From Octopus bimaculoides (lineage: Eukaryota): a DNA stretch of 64,000 bases. Every line of letters begins with the position of its first letter. Positions within the stretch are counted from its first letter, which is position 1. The notes under the pieces are model-generated. The model made no database searches and was not told where the DNA came from. It worked only from the letters and a program-made list of their open reading frames with translations. The translations under genes and the position numbers were made by a program. Of the stretch, positions 1,597 through 63,926 are shown piece after piece. Location: contig NC_068988.1 of assembly GCF_001194135.2 (NCBI RefSeq), forward strand, positions 30,852,618-30,916,617, written 5' to 3'.

Positions 1597-1915
1597 ATGG
1601 CAAATGAAAACCATGTTCTCAGCAACCTACTGCAAGTTTTCTCCATCATGCTTCTCGTGACGTTAGAGATTGTCGAATCGAACGATGCAGGTTATTATGA
1701 GAAACTAAGCAAGACACACTGTCTGAAAAATCGATTGATTAGGATACCATACGCACCATCCCTCATAGATTGCGCATCAAGCTGTATGATGACTAATAAG
1801 TGTGGTGTTTTTAGTTATTGCAAGGGTACATGCAAATTGCATGAATCTCTTGTTCCTGGGTCTCCTATCAAGACGACATGCAACTGTATAACTTATTTAA
1901 TGCTAGATAGAAACA
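1597..1915 (+). CDS. Paralog 1 coding exon 1: signal peptide + 8-Cys PAN/Apple-like domain
   Basis: Acceptor ttttcag at 1589, ATG 1597, MANENHVLSNLLQVFSIMLLVTLEIVES...CLKNRLIRIPYAPSLIDCASSCMMTNKCGVFSYCKGTC...CNC, donor A|GTGAGT at 1915/1916. Confidence 0.9.
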
Positions 1916-4900
1916 GTGAGTAAATTATGCATCCCACTTGTTTTTGTGCTTTTTGTATTCCGTTCCCACTATTATCGCAATGCAATGTATCTAACCACAT
2001 GGACACCAGGTGCCTCTCTTTTCTTCTACAGTCTCTATGTTTTCTGATTACAATCGTTACATTTTCGTATTTATACTGGGGTTTCATACACGTAGTTAAC
2101 ATCACCAAATGTTATCCCTTTTGCAAAACATTCGCTACTAGTTCATTTGAATCCTTCTTCAAACAGTCAGATATCAGTTTACCTGAAAAGAAATGACGCA
2201 GCATTTATTGGGAAGGGTTGAATTTAATGCGTGCAAGATTTTATTAATGAGGAACAAGTGAAACTAGTTTTAATTGCGATTCACTTAAAGCCAGGAAAAT
2301 TTCTGCATGCCCTCGTATACGTACATTATACATACATACACAAAAATATATGTGTATACAGCCTTGGTTTTTTTTAAAATCTCATTACGATAAGTAAATC
2401 CTTATATGTGTATACACACACACACACACACACACACACACACACACACACACACACACACACACACACACACATATATATATATATATATAAGCATCTA
2501 CTTTTCGTATGCCTTCCAGCATGGAAGAGATAAGAAGCATTAAGTTTCTTCGTAAACTGTAAGGCAAGAAAATACTCCTTTATAAATAAATGATCGTTGT
2601 TGAGACTGCGCCATATCTTTAAAACCATCGTCAGAAACCTAAAAAGTAGTTCATTTCGAAGATTTATTCATTTGGATAAAAAAATCATTTAGGAATTGAA
2701 TCCAAGTAAATAAGTCAATCATTCAATATATGCAATATCCTAACAAATCTGTTCATTTGAATAATGCTAAATGGTCGTTTCCCAATGAAATTCGAGTACG
2801 AGGGCTGTAACCAATCGTATAACTAATATTAATGAACCAACTATTTTATATGTCAATGACGTCTCTCATTTATTCTCAAAACTCTAACGTGTCGAAGGAC
2901 CATCTTTCATAGGTCGCTCGATCAGCTAGAAATATCAGAGAAATCTCCCTCAAATTACATCCTATCATCTTGAAATGAATGGTACACTGGGTGATATTGT
3001 GCTAAGAAACGTGAAAGGGATGGTCATGTTAGAACAAATTGTTCCATAGGACTTCTTAATCAAGACCGAGTGATAAAGAAAAACAATAACAAAATTCTCT
3101 TATTTCTGTCTCGTATCAAAATCTGAAATTGTTTGTAATAGAAACTATAAGTGAAAATGAATATGAAACTTGGGAAAATTGTATATCGATTATAATAATT
3201 TCTAAAATAATACAGCACTTTTCACAGCACTGAAGGAAACAACATTTTATTTAAAATCTTATTAACAGTTTACACCAAAATCTCGTCTGTTCCTTTACAG
3301 TTAAAACAGTATTATTTATTACTCATGCAGGCAGAAACAGGGTGAAAATTTATGACATAACCAAGTACTTGTTTAAAGAAAGTATTCTTTATAGATTCTG
3401 GAACAATTGGCCTATCGACAAGGTAAGATTTCGAAATGTTTCTCATTTCATAAAGCAGTCAATATAATAGTCAGCTCACTATGTATTGAAGGATGTAACT
3501 TTTATATGTTGTTCATATCGTTACTGCAATGGCGTATGTAATTTCTTCTCTTGATTTTGTTGATTTTATTGCTGTTTAAATCTTGTCAAACATGCTTCGG
3601 TTTTGATACGTGTCTTATTTTCGTTTATGTCTTTTTATGCCAATTGCTCCGATACTCATCTAAATGCACACACACATACACAGGCAACCACACACTCGGC
3701 ACACACATACATACAGAGGCACAGACACACACCCAAGCATACACGCACACACGCATATATCCACAAGCATTCTTATTTTGTTAGCCATATATGCGTTCTT
3801 GTAAAGAAGTTCAAGTTGCAAAGGAATCTCTACGTGATCCTTTTATTTGGAGGAAATAACGACCAAATCTAGCACAAATCAGAACTTACCTTTCTACTGG
3901 GTACTCTTTCTTGACAAACAATATTTTGGGAAACCTATACGATTAGAACATCTTCTAAACTTCGTCTTCTACCAGGAAGAATATTTAGGGAAAAGGAAAA
4001 CAACAATAGATGAAAGGTCAAACCGTTCGGCCTTAGAATATTGCTTCTGAATCTTTACGTTGTGTTCAAATACTGTCGGTGTGAAACTTGTCTTTTCTGC
4101 TCTCAGGGTTGATGTAATAAAGTACAAGTCTAATTTTGGTGTCAATGAAATCTCACTATCCCCACACGAAGCTAGTGAATTTGCAAAATCGGAAGAGCGT
4201 CGGACAAAAATGATTTGTGCCATTTCGTACGGTTCTCTACCGTACTGCACACACTCATTTATTGTCTGTCTACTATCGACGCTACTGAAATTGGAAATGG
4301 TTTTATCAAATTTGAAGGGATGAAGCAGTAAACTGACTTCGCTAAGGTTGAGATTCTGAAGGTAGAGAACCGTATAAAATGCTATAAAACATTTTATCCG
4401 ACGATCTTTATCTCTTCACAAACAAAGGTATGACGACGGTCGGGTGTGTACAATATTGTAGGAATAGTATTACACAAATAAATATTTGCATATAGCTATC
4501 TAGAATAAACTTTTGCCGAATTAATATGTTCACGCAGAATGTATTCTGTACTACACCAAACGTAGGTACGATAATAAACTAATAGCGTAATAAATACTTA
4601 CGACCATCGCTGACAATTGCCCGCCGTTAACAGCCGACTGTCAATTGCTGACAGTTCACAGTTTCCTTACTTTATTGAAAAACGTCAGTCCACATTTGGT
4701 TACGTGGGAGTGGTCCTGATGTTTCTCCAATAGTATGTATGTATGAATATATGTGTGTATATATGTATGGATGGCTTATGCATATTATAGAAATGTTCCA
4801 GATCTTCTCCGTACTGTGTTTCCCCCTTATTACAGTAATGGGGATAAAACTACTACTAATCAGAACATGAAGTGACTGAAAATAATTTCCAGAAATTTAT

Positions 4901-7900
4901 TTTCACATCCATTCCATGAATCGTGGTTCAAAGAATAAAGATAAAGAATCTGTCCTACAGGCGCAATGGATTTTACACAGTTACTTTCAAGTCAATATTT
5001 AGTAATTTGTTGTCCATTTCCACCTCTTGTAGATTGAACAAAAATGCAGGCATATCTTTTTCCAGAATCTTCTCTCTCTCAAGGCCCTCCCCCACCAAAC
5101 ATTTCTCTTGTCCTTACTTACATACAACAGTCTTTCTCCATTTCCTCTTTGTCACTCTCCATCTCTAACTTGCCATCTGAAAACCAGTCTCATTGTACTC
5201 ATTCTTGTCTCTCCATCTGCCTCGCACCCGCTTCCTTTCTTAGTCTGTCTCACTCTCGTCTTCCTTGTCAGATTTCTACTTGATTTCATTCAACATTTTA
5301 TTTGCAGGTGAAACTCGTCTTGATAAAAAATAATACTGAAATTCACTCATTAACTTTCAATGCAAAAATGTCAAGTAACACCGACTGGTTCCATTCCAGT
5401 AGACTCCTTTCAACTCCCTGGTTTGGAAATGTAGCAGCAGCGTACAGGTACTTTGATGGGTATATATTAACATTTTATTTATTTGCATTATAGATTTCTG
5501 TTGCTGATAAGTTATGATTTCTTGCCTAGTCAGTTACATATTTTGGAATGAGGTTACAGTCGACTATGATACATCGATCTCAGTAATTAACTAGTATTAT
5601 TTTATGGACAATGATACCAAGCATGATCGTAACGGGATTCGGAATCAAAACAACGAGGAGCAAAAATAACTTCAACATAGCTTGTTGTTTGCAACTTCAC
5701 TGATTCTTTCTTTAATTCTTTTAAATGACGACGAGGTACTTCTTGGTTATCACATTCCCATTAAAACATTAGGTCATCTCCCCCCAGATGAAAAACATTG
5801 CTTAACCCGCAATAAAACAAAAGTAAGAATGATAATAATAATAATAATGATGATAACTATAATAATAATAACTCAGTAATAAATAGAACAGGGCAGCATA
5901 TTAGCAAAATCTGAAGACACAAAAATCCAAATAACTACCGATCAAGAACATGTTTTAACATCACCTACAAGATTCTCACATCTATACTAACTGAAAGGAT
6001 ATACGATTTCTTTGAACAGAACTCTGCCTTTCCACAAGCGCAAAAAGGCTGTAAAAGGAATTCTTATGTTTGCAAAGATCAATTACCCATAAATAAAATG
6101 AATGTAGAGAATTGCCGGAGCAAAAAGAAAAACCTGAGTATGGCATGGATAGACAACTGGAAAGTGTTTGATAGTATCCTACATAATTGGCTGCTCAAGG
6201 CACTCGAGATATATAAGATGTCGTCTCCAAATTCTTACAAGGTAGCAAGGCCAAGTGGAACACGCGTCTCGCTGTAAACCATAGTAATTGTATAAGCCAA
6301 TCTAACAACGTCAACATAAAACCAGACATCTTTCAAGGTGACTGCCTCTCCCCATTACTCTTTTGCATGGCACGGATCCCACTCAGAGAGAACAGAAAAA
6401 CTGAAATATAACATAAAAACCGAGGCTAAAATGATTACAGGTCTGTTTGCTCAGAGTTGAACTGGTGCTAAATAATAACTGATTCCTATAATTTACAGTT
6501 ATTTTTTATATTCTATGTAATATGTAACAAACACGAAAAGAAATATTCATCTCAATGATAAAACGATAAACAGAGCGATTTAATTAAACGGAACTTGGTA
6601 TCGTAAATACAATCGTAAAATTCTCCATGAAGATATTTATTAAATTCATCACATCTAATATATTTCAATTCTATATTTAAGAGATGAGAAATTAGGTATA
6701 TTATTAACATTATTTACATTATTTACATTCGACGGATAATTGTCCTCATTTTGTTTGTTGAAATGGATCCTCTCACGGACGAGGGCACGTCCTGCCCTTT
6801 CCGTTACTCTTTTAGCTTTATGTGAATCGACTGGTGTCGTTATATTCAAGCCAGGTGGTGTTAGCTTTGAGTCTCTACAACTACTTAAGAAAGTTAGATG
6901 GTTTGAAAGACGAGCTAGTTTTGATGGAGTTTCTCTATATGTCTCCATTGAAGTCTAATTTAAGAGATGAGGAATTATGTATATTATTTACATTATTTAC
7001 ATTATTTACATTCGACGGATATTTGTTCTCATCTTGTGTAAATAATGTAAATAATGTAAATAATCTAATATATTTGTTGCAGCAAAAGGTATTTCAAGAT
7101 CCAACCAAGCGGAGGCAACTACCTACTCCATGTATTGTGGGAGAATTACAGGACTTACGAAATTCGCTACCGAATGAACATCGATGGTAAGAAATATATT
7201 TCAATGTTGCGTACGCAAACCATTGTATATATTTGTATGTGTATATATAAGTCCGTGTGTGTGCGTGTGTGTATGTGTGTGTGTACGTATGTACGTTTTG
7301 TATACTTCACAATTTTATTAGTATTCTTCTTAAAAGGAGGTAACTGATTTAAAACAAAGAAAGGTGCGACCGCTGGATTTTGGATGATACATATAACTAT
7401 TACTAATCGATCTTTAAGAAAAAGTCATCTTACAGATTGTATTTGGTAAAGTCCGTGTGTCTCGGTCAGTTTCTTTTGTTAGAAAGTCTTAGCTTCTCCC
7501 AATTGCCACTACGACATTTACTAACATAACTATGTGCACCAATACTTATTTATATAAATGTGAGTCTATAATCAAGGTAGAGTGAAAGCTGTTGCCGTGG
7601 TTGTACATAGTTATTCTCTTTCTTGCTGATTTTCGAAGAGATATTTCCATCTTCAGTGCAGCTGACTAATGTCTTGTGCACAAACTTTCTTTCACGCCTC
7701 AAATAACTACGTCAGGTTTGTTATTTTGGCGCTTGGTAGAAGTTTTAAAAGAAATGCTCAACTAATATTCACTAGGGAGCCGCAAGTCCATATTTGTTGA
7801 TGTATACATACGATTGCAAATTATTTGATAGGTACCGTCTGAGTGATGCCGTCCGGCATTTGAATGTTGCCTGTACTGATCATAATCCATTCCTTTCATC

Positions 7901-63790: not shown

Positions 63791-63834
63791 GTTATTTAAA
63801 TGAGAAACATTTTGAAATTTCAAAATTGTATTAC

Positions 63835-63926
63835 CTTTTCAATAAGCAAACTGTTCCAGTATAAATAAATAGGACTTCTTTCAAATAAGTTTTTGGTAAT
63901 CTTAAATACTTTCTGCGGCTTTTTAC
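63835..63926 (-). CDS. Paralog 4 exon 2
   Basis: ttcatacag|GT...GAAAAG|gtaata, 92 nt, [30 protein letters not shown]. Confidence 0.75.

Follow-up and report, generated by a model that had tools for sequence, protein, structure and literature searches.

What is encoded by four divergent gene copies strung out along a 64,000-nucleotide stretch of Octopus bimaculoides DNA (hereafter the window), and what has driven them apart? A first-pass annotation had described a tandem cluster of four divergent paralogs, and its exon sizes, intron phases and open reading frames were all reproduced in the present analysis. The copies, designated c1 to c4, follow a common plan of five coding exons (319-328, 92, 149-152, 102-107 and 50-53 nt) with intron phases 1, 0, 2 and 1 and AG...GT at each internal exon border. 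Spliced open reading frames were obtained for c1 (238 aa), c2 (240 or 242 aa) and c3 (241 aa). The gene models are as follows.

c1 (LOC106876625) exon 1, 1597..1915, plus strand: 319 nt, ATG at 1597 and GT at 1916; putative signal peptide and predicted PAN/Apple module, phase-1 end; equals XP_014780726.1
c1 exon 2, 3331..3422, plus strand: 92 nt, AG/GT borders; the C-terminal domain begins here
c1 exon 3, 5308..5459, plus strand: 152 nt; RefSeq isoform X2 (234 aa) uses an alternative donor at 5448
c1 exon 4, 7083..7186, plus strand: 104 nt
c1 exon 5, 9586..9635, plus strand: 50 nt including the stop
c2 (LOC106876624) exon 1, 17175..17499, plus strand: 325 nt from the RefSeq ATG at 17175, or 319 nt from a second in-frame ATG at 17181
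c2 exon 2, 19375..19466, plus strand: 92 nt
c2 exon 3, 21571..21722, plus strand: 152 nt
c2 exon 4, 23048..23154, plus strand: 107 nt; the donor is that of the RefSeq protein
c2 exon 5, 26524..26576, plus strand: 53 nt including the stop; AATAAA 31 nt downstream
c3 exon 1, 41373..41700, minus strand: 328 nt; putative signal peptide and predicted PAN/Apple module
c3 exon 2, 39286..39377, minus strand: 92 nt
c3 exon 3, 37068..37216, minus strand: 149 nt
c3 exon 4, 35449..35555, minus strand: 107 nt; an alternative donor at 35452 (104 nt) likewise keeps the frame
c3 exon 5, 34089..34138, minus strand: 50 nt including the stop
c4 exon 1, beyond base 64000 and outside the window, minus strand
c4 exon 2, 63835..63926, minus strand: 92 nt, open
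c4 exon 3, 61884..62032, minus strand: 149 nt, open
c4 exon 4, 56596..56697, minus strand: 102 nt, degraded and out of frame, with stops
c4 exon 5, 54832..54881, minus strand: 50 nt, open and intact, ending ...RVSILFK and a stop

On these models c1, c2 and c3 are intact, and c4 is a pseudogene because its exon 4 of 102 nt breaks the frame and carries stops, both in the frame entered from exon 3 and, as TAG and TAA, in the homologous frame. Within the window, tblastn with exon 1 gave E-values of 3e-32 between c1 and c2 and of 1e-11 to 2e-17 for c3, and the similarity of the four copies lies far beyond the level of chance. When proteins of other Octopus genomes were searched against the window, matches fell exactly on the exons of c1-c4 and nowhere else, and the c3 C-terminus (...LMVISVLFK) matches that of Octopus sinensis relatives (...LVISVLFK). 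The region is filled with LINE debris and microsatellites. Assembly gaps were checked against all exons in the window and no exon touches one: gap 24599-25247 lies within c2 intron 4 and gap 62299-62559 within c4 intron 2, gaps 9832-10459 and 26696-26909 begin 197 nt past the c1 stop and 120 nt past the c2 stop, respectively, and the other gaps are all intergenic. The public chromosome record CM046608.1 has the same gaps and 0 mismatches to the window over 29,402 bases.

Two of the copies are present in RefSeq, where c1 and c2 are labelled uncharacterized or Apple domain-containing (UniRef name "Apple domain-containing protein"). XP_014780726.1 (238 aa), XP_014780727.1 (234 aa, donor 5448) and XP_014780725.1 (242 aa) are residue-identical to the c1 and c2 models, and two c1 isoforms are listed. 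No counterpart of c3 was found in the protein database, and this copy has apparently been left unannotated; a literature search for the c1-c4 loci found no paper naming them. The cluster was checked for extension beyond 64 kb, as the first-pass annotation had advised, and the array does go on outside the window, with LOC106876623 at 17-25 kb past it and a further member starting ~10 kb beyond. The window represents part of a tandem array of at least 100 kb. All close relatives looked up are from the genus Octopus (O. bimaculoides, O. sinensis and O. vulgaris), and the gene family is, judged on these close members, apparently Octopus-restricted.

The predicted N-termini contain a hydrophobic stretch of 12-15 residues, after which small residues occupy -3 and -1, and secondary-structure prediction places a helix at residues 4-23 and then a disordered linker, in agreement with the signal-like N-terminus reported earlier. 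The leader is probably a cleaved signal peptide, and the products would therefore be secreted glycoproteins of ~24.5 kDa, with one N-glycosylation sequon in c1, five in c2 and four in c3. Downstream of the leader, the PAN/Apple module is also encoded by coding exon 1, whose 3' border has phase 1. Pfam matches to this module were obtained for c1 (PAN_4, E 1.7e-4, 22 bits where the cut-off is 27) and c3 (PAN_1, E 0.47) and not for c2; among 13 family members, seven matched PAN_4 and five PAN_1, all weakly and under the curated cut-offs. Across the 13 members C45, C62, C66, C78, C82, C98 and C100 are invariant and C72 is nearly so, and the conserved cysteine core round a C-x3-C ... C-x5-C-x3-C hairpin is present. 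An AlphaFold2 model of the whole protein (pLDDT 77.7, pTM 0.71) was built, as was one of the C-terminal domain, the underlying alignments comprising just 7 and 10 sequences. Foldseek matched the module to factor XI A4 (2j8j; probability 0.99, rmsd 3.4 Å over 79 columns), HGF NK2/NK1 (4iua and 1bht; 0.99 and 0.96, 3.1-3.6 Å), an Eimeria PAN domain (1hky; 0.94) and the MIC4 apple domain (4a5v; 0.89), with E-values of only 0.05-0.3 and an rmsd of 3.1-5.2 Å for factor XI, HGF and Eimeria.

The eight near-invariant cysteines, the Foldseek probabilities of 0.94-0.99 and the UniRef name uphold the PAN/Apple module proposed in the first-pass annotation, at Pfam scores below threshold, and the module is predicted to adopt the PAN/Apple fold of a helix on a curved antiparallel sheet. 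It resembles the PAN/Apple superfamily (plasminogen/HGF N domain, factor XI, prekallikrein, MIC4 and Sarcocystis SML-2; PF00024, PF14295) in size (~75 residues), in extracellular setting and in the cysteine-rich core C-x3-C-x5-C-G-[YF]-F-S-Y-C-x3-C. It differs in having eight conserved cysteines, whereas four to six are usual, and in its partner, which is neither a kringle, protease or lectin nor any other named domain.

That partner, the C-terminal domain on exons 2-5, is beta-rich and ~130 aa long, and was modelled as ~10 strands and one helix (pLDDT 88, pTM 0.82). Searches for it found no Pfam family and no solved structural relative. The only recurring weak fold matches were TLDc, which gave no significant structural match (7obp, probability 0.35-0.51, TM ≤ 0.37) and no Pfam match, and fibrinogen-related domains (ficolin, angiopoietin, FGL1), which were rejected at a probability ≤ 0.44 and rmsd ≥ 10 Å, again with no Pfam match. 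When 1.84 billion proteins were searched with a profile of the domain, 190 matches were returned, the distant ones carrying a domain of ~185 aa. Its hosts include amphioxus ZP/EGF/C-type-lectin proteins, an adhesion GPCR of the hemichordate Ptychodera, and proteins of crinoids, scallop, Dreissena and unionid bivalves, as well as Octopus LOC118766143 and LOC106873068. The octopus profile (A3) aligned with that of the ~185-aa domain (A5) at a probability of 99.2% in hhalign (E 6e-20, 122 columns), and an HMM of the wide domain matches c1 at E 8e-17 and c2 at E 3e-14, with the cluster proteins covering only about positions 30-120 of 185. The "unknown domain" of the first-pass annotation is therefore still unnamed, without a Pfam or solved relative, but it is not an orphan. 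The genes had not been recognised there as a named family; the second domain has no name, and c1 and c2 were already in RefSeq as uncharacterised.

The two versions of the domain have in common a core of F-x-R-S-x-x-x-x-x-W-x-x-L-P-I-x-K-V-K ... F-N-G-T-G-x-x-x-x-x-W-F ... Y-F-x-I. The octopus cluster version is ~55 residues shorter and lacks clearly aligned N-terminal W-x-x-V-F...G strands, R-R-F, G-C-x-x-D-x-G-W and the A-D near the end; of the nearly invariant positions, W5, R-x-F, C133...C150, G-W and A-D are absent, and no cysteine is conserved there. By alignment, the octopus domain is a truncated and remodelled derivative of an extracellular domain that is old, unnamed and widespread among molluscs and invertebrate deuterostomes; the GC..D.GW motif, the conserved cysteine pair and the first strands of the parent have been lost. 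Pfam lacks the parent domain, no solved structure matches it, and it has no known function. The combination of PAN with this domain is also found in another Octopus gene and in Dreissena and unionids, and since the bivalve genes, apparently arranged in tandem arrays, couple PAN to the full-length domain, the architecture predates octopuses.

Divergence was examined in c1 and c2, the youngest intact pair (dN 0.50, dS 0.59, omega 0.84). Identity is 58.5% over exons 2-5 versus 72.9% over 200-nt intron flanks (Fisher p = 8.5e-8) and 74.8% over 2,266 nt of intron 4, the mature-protein exons having diverged ~1.8x as much as neighbouring introns; the leader is 79% identical versus 65% for PAN (p = 0.016). 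This argument for selection is drawn from one gene pair with introns as the neutral yardstick, and the control pair, c3-c4, had no exon acceleration relative to introns. As the dS of 0.59 exceeds the intron divergence (JC ~0.3), the mutation rate may be raised locally, or gene conversion may have acted on the introns alone. Taken alone, omega fits relaxed constraint, and the faster change of exons than of introns points to interaction with a changing partner, for example a pathogen, prey or gamete. The c1-c2 contrast, the c4 pseudogene and the restricted expansion past the window support the lineage-expanded birth and death proposed in the first-pass annotation.

Fast exons outpacing introns, a conserved leader and tandem birth and death have been described for conotoxins and snake venom phospholipase A2 genes, which have no sequence or fold relation to the octopus proteins; the latter are larger and have two domains. 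Saliva or venom components of the posterior salivary gland, diversified through an arms race with prey and acting as secreted toxins or as spreading factors, would show this same pattern in a single lineage and would suit small, predicted secreted, disulfide-rich proteins. We regard this origin as unlikely, because neither similarity to any known toxin family of cephalopods nor a toxin-like match by sequence or fold was found, a link sought in literature and proteomes was not found, and ~24 kDa with a lectin-type module suits recognition equally well. A slightly less probable role is in reproduction (egg coat, sperm-egg recognition or secreted chemical cues diverging quickly by sexual selection). 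Gamete-recognition genes are known for such divergence, and fast-evolving secreted coding parts, confinement to one genus and the co-occurrence of the related full-length domain and a zona pellucida module in one amphioxus protein fit it; that last link, however, is a domain association in a distant animal only, and a large array (at least six members at the locus, more elsewhere) is less typical of such genes. Improbable is a largely decaying array whose copies are under relaxed constraint, serve no specific function today and have open frames as leftovers: it would accommodate the omega value, the loss of one copy in four, the absence of c3 from the protein database and the repeat debris throughout, but neutrality predicts equal exon and intron divergence rather than the 1.8x observed, three frames of ~720 nt remain open with all splice sites intact despite >40% nucleotide divergence, the eight PAN cysteines and the core aromatics of the C-terminal domain are invariant or nearly so in 13 members from three species, and RefSeq lists two c1 isoforms.

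We consider likely a structural and evolutionary account in which diversifying pressure acts on an Octopus-restricted tandem family that combines a leader, a PAN/Apple module and a shortened beta domain and evolves by birth and death. The array expands by tandem duplication and sheds copies such as c4; under this account the PAN module, probably together with the beta domain, would bind a carbohydrate or protein target, and the target itself may shift, so that novel variants are favoured. Such a pattern would be typical of recognition or effector proteins that act where an organism meets others or where gametes meet. As to role, our single best guess among those possible, offered tentatively, is a lectin-like recognition protein in immunity or at mucosal surfaces. 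A more far-reaching version is rather doubtful, namely that the cluster is a repertoire, specific to Octopus and under positive selection, of secreted proteins for recognition or effector roles on an undescribed fold, whose ~185-aa parent is an old bilaterian module (ZP proteins, adhesion GPCRs, lectin/EGF) missed by all domain databases.

New biology in cephalopods comes in large part from lineage-restricted, tandem-expanded secreted proteins, most of them with functions yet to be described. Clean gene models are now given for a testable family of this kind, including the intact c3 and the pseudogene c4, and the ~185-aa domain merits a database entry and an experimental structure.

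The window is eukaryotic in character (35% G+C, densely packed TA/CA microsatellites), is interrupted by eleven assembly gaps and contains four paralogous genes in a tandem cluster. Three open reading frames resemble a common first coding exon, those of c1 (LOC106876625) and c2 (LOC106876624) being similar well above chance (tblastn E 3e-32) and that of c3 matching at E 1e-11 to 2e-17. A translated self-comparison, and then a scan for open segments with AG...GT borders and a matching phase, supplied the remaining exons. Splicing c1-c3 reproduced the exon sizes, phases and three open reading frames reported in the first-pass annotation, with intron phases 1,0,2,1 and canonical splice sites common to all three models.

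1597 (+): first coding exon of c1; exons of 319/92/152/104/50 nt, spliced length 717 nt (238 aa)
17175/17181 (+): first coding exon of c2; exons of 319(325)/92/152/107/53 nt, spliced length 723 nt (240 aa), or 729 nt (242 aa) from the upstream ATG
41700 (-): first coding exon of c3; exons of 328/92/149/107/50 nt, spliced length 726 nt (241 aa)
63926-63835 (-): exon 2 of c4
56697-56596 (-): exon 4 of c4, 102 nt, frame-breaking

The fourth paralog, c4, enters the window at exon 2, placing its exon 1 past base 64000, and is a pseudogene. Its exons 2, 3 and 5 are open, while exon 4 has stops in the frame coming from exon 3 and, in the frame homologous to c3, a TAG replacing a Trp codon plus a TAA. 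Exons 4 and 5 were placed by DNA alignment to c3, as an open-frame search misses them, exon 4 being broken. Within the window, family proteins of other Octopus genomes match these 19 exons alone, and no further relic exons were found there. The final 50-nt exon was considered as a chance open reading frame and this was ruled out, since the ...ISVLFK-type end recurs in RefSeq models from three species.

An alternative GT donor lies 12 nt inside exon 3 of c1, at 5448 (+); it keeps the phase and corresponds to RefSeq isoform X2 (234 aa). An acceptor-like TTTTCAG/GA is conserved 2-7 nt 5' of the ATG in all three intact copies (1583-1596 (+), 17166-17174 (+) and 41701-41712 (-)), so that each gene probably starts further 5', with a non-coding exon and a 5'UTR intron expected ahead of the first coding exon. 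The gap at 1386-1500 falls in the stretch of c1 where this predicted exon is expected. Immediately 5' of the first coding exon of c3 is a long ATC/ATT trinucleotide repeat (41701-41945, -/+), which encodes poly-Asn/poly-Asp in an 83-aa plus-strand open reading frame.

No exon touches an assembly gap, and c3 is gap-free throughout. The gaps within or close to genes are the following, all others being intergenic:

24599-25247: inside intron 4 of c2
62299-62559: inside intron 2 of c4
9832-10459: starts 197 nt past the c1 stop codon
26696-26909: starts 120 nt past the c2 stop codon
1386-1500: about 100 nt 5' of the c1 ATG

Window bases 7175-36576 were compared with the O. bimaculoides chromosome record CM046608.1 (assembly GCA_001194135.2) and agree, gaps as well, along all 29,402 bases (0 mismatches), which places the window at about 30,852,618-30,916,617 of CM046608.1. 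All eleven gaps have a TA, CA or CATA-type microsatellite at their border (for example at 1350-1540, 9750-9831, 13640-13718 and 26650-26695), and they are probably unreadable simple repeats rather than missing genes. Degraded pieces of non-LTR retrotransposons are also present:

48127-48699 (+), 100-261 (-), 12693-13163 (+), 5933-6384 (+) and 63121-63626 (+): degraded non-LTR retrotransposon pieces

Intergenic pieces match the RVT_1 reverse transcriptase (E 7e-7 and 4.5e-4) and the Exo_endo_phos_2 endonuclease (E 2.8e-6); reverse transcriptase-like pieces within intron 3 of c1 and an intron of c4 are alike in translation and have no Pfam match.

At the N-terminus of the encoded proteins, hydropathy averages about 2.3 over 12 residues, with small residues next at -3/-1, and the AlphaFold2 model places a helix here (residues 4-23) ahead of a low-confidence linker, which fits a predicted cleaved signal peptide. 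Residues ~35-105 contain eight cysteines, of which seven are invariant and one nearly so among 13 members. A Pfam scan of three cluster proteins, 13 family members and 18 distant relatives returned weak PAN matches and nothing else, with PAN_4/PAN_1 below threshold. Foldseek searches with the whole-protein AlphaFold2 model (pLDDT 77.7, pTM 0.71) recovered factor XI apple 4, the HGF N domain, an Eimeria PAN and the Toxoplasma MIC4 apple with high to very high probability and rmsd down to 3.1 A. We accept the first-pass assignment of the N-terminal module to PAN/Apple at the fold level. Coding exon 1 carries this module and the leader and nothing else, and its 3' border is in phase 1, as is most common for extracellular modules that have been shuffled.

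Exons 2-5 code for ~130 residues, modelled alone with pLDDT 88 and pTM 0.82 as about ten strands and one helix. Foldseek found nothing convincing for this C-terminal domain in the PDB (best E 0.11, TM 0.33 or less) or among viral models (best E 0.019, at a low probability). A search of 1.84 billion representative proteins with a ten-member family profile returned 190 matches at E 0.001 or better, and those outside the Octopus family fall in a common, well-conserved domain of ~185 residues, here termed the wide domain. Amphioxus proteins carry one to four copies of it with EGF, fibronectin-3, zona pellucida or C-type lectin modules, and it is also present in a Ptychodera adhesion GPCR and in scallop, unionid, Dreissena, crinoid and other Octopus proteins. 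Profile-profile comparison aligned the short and wide domains over 122 columns at E 6e-20 with near-certain probability. Of the core, F[18 protein letters not shown], [16 protein letters not shown] and also the last strand are retained in the cluster version, which is without the long first loop, R-R-F, G-C-x-x-D-x-G-W, the cysteine pair and A-D of the wide domain. No Pfam entry was found for the wide domain, and its profile found no relative among all PDB sequences, a designed helical bundle (E 2.8) being the sole match. An assignment to DUF7922 was rejected, as the summed score of a four-repeat amphioxus protein was gone when a single repeat was scanned. The C-terminal part had initially been described as an unknown domain, which stands as regards Pfam and the PDB, but through its link to the wide domain it is not an orphan.

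Proteins of Dreissena, Sinanodonta and Potamilus and another Octopus gene have a PAN module ahead of the full-length domain, indicating that the architecture predates the octopus cluster; on the simplest reading, the short domain of the cluster would be a derived variant. Genes of this architecture have consecutive locus tags in Sinanodonta (ACJMK2_036314-16) and Potamilus (CHS0354_042693-94), which suggests that the parent architecture is also in tandem arrays in freshwater mussels.

The close relatives looked up all belong to one of three species, O. bimaculoides, O. sinensis and O. vulgaris. The first-pass annotation had raised an extension of the cluster past 64 kb, and the array does continue, with LOC106876623 and the probable start of another member:

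CM046608.1 30,923,481-30,951,938, positions 10001-18458 (-): LOC106876623, oriented like c3 and c4, with five coding exons alike, 17-25 kb past the right end of the window
Same locus, positions 2-58 (opposite strand): start of another member ~10 kb beyond LOC106876623, matching over 19 N-terminal residues only (79% identity, E 2.6e-5)

The 10 kb upstream of c1, a stretch rich in gaps, yielded no further copy or relic exon. Family members also occur at a distance: LOC106874575 is on this chromosome, 62 Mb off, and others are on other scaffolds. The O. sinensis model LOC118764386 (402 aa, RefSeq) has one PAN module and then two short C-terminal domains, either a real internal duplication or a gene-predictor fusion of two neighbours.

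The c1 models are identical to XP_014780726.1 (238 aa) and XP_014780727.1 (234 aa, donor 5448), and the c2 model to XP_014780725.1 (242 aa), which supports the continuity of both genes across their introns. RefSeq calls both an "uncharacterized protein", and UniRef an "Apple domain-containing protein". For c3, the top database match reaches only 54% identity (an O. sinensis protein), and none of the O. bimaculoides family proteins retrieved equals c3 or c4; c3 therefore appears to be without a protein model, and in RefSeq it may be entered under some type other than protein-coding. Looking up the exact c1 and c2 sequences returned the genome record only and zero transcript assemblies, and searches of the literature by locus, accession, domain name and lineage-specific secreted genes turned up no paper on the cluster. 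Annotation, as uncharacterised, thus already existed for two of its four genes, and tandem arrays of fast-evolving secreted proteins restricted to one lineage are a familiar kind. New are the tie between an orphan-looking domain and a widespread unnamed one, its truncated form, exons that diverge faster than introns and, probably, one unannotated gene (c3).

The c1/c2 pair is a segmental duplicate whose introns can still be aligned, with 72-81% identity where homologous (intron 4, 74.8% over 2,266 bases). Its exons are less similar (exon 2, 67%; exon 3, 57%; exon 4, 57%; exon 5, 50%), exons 2-5 pooled having 58.5% identity versus 72.9% in the 200-nt flanks (Fisher p = 8.5e-8), or Jukes-Cantor distances of 0.60 and 0.34, respectively. 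The leader-coding part is 79% identical versus 65% for PAN (p = 0.016). Overall, dN was 0.50, dS 0.59 and omega 0.84, with omega much alike in the PAN and C-terminal parts. In this one gene pair the contrast suggests that selection has favoured change in the mature protein. Gene conversion limited to introns, or a local difference in rate, is a caveat to that reading, as is a dS larger than the intron distance. The c3-c4 pair, of which one is dead, has 70% identity in exons and 60-81% in flanks, with no exon-intron contrast. Neutral decay ranks last among the explanations considered, as coding sequence of c1-c2 outpaces its own introns, contrary to the prediction of relaxed constraint.

What the analysis shows is the array with its gene structure, both domains and their relatives, the dead copy and the exon-intron contrast, and from these a role can be proposed. 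The products would be secreted and, given their N-glycosylation sequons (one in c1, five in c2 and four in c3), may be glycosylated. They would bind a carbohydrate or protein partner via the PAN module, a binding function established for apicomplexan PAN lectins and plasma apple domains, and that partner may itself be changing. A putative role in saliva or venom ranks second and a putative reproductive role third; ahead of both we place lectin-like recognition, in immunity or at mucosal surfaces, as the putative function of this Octopus family.
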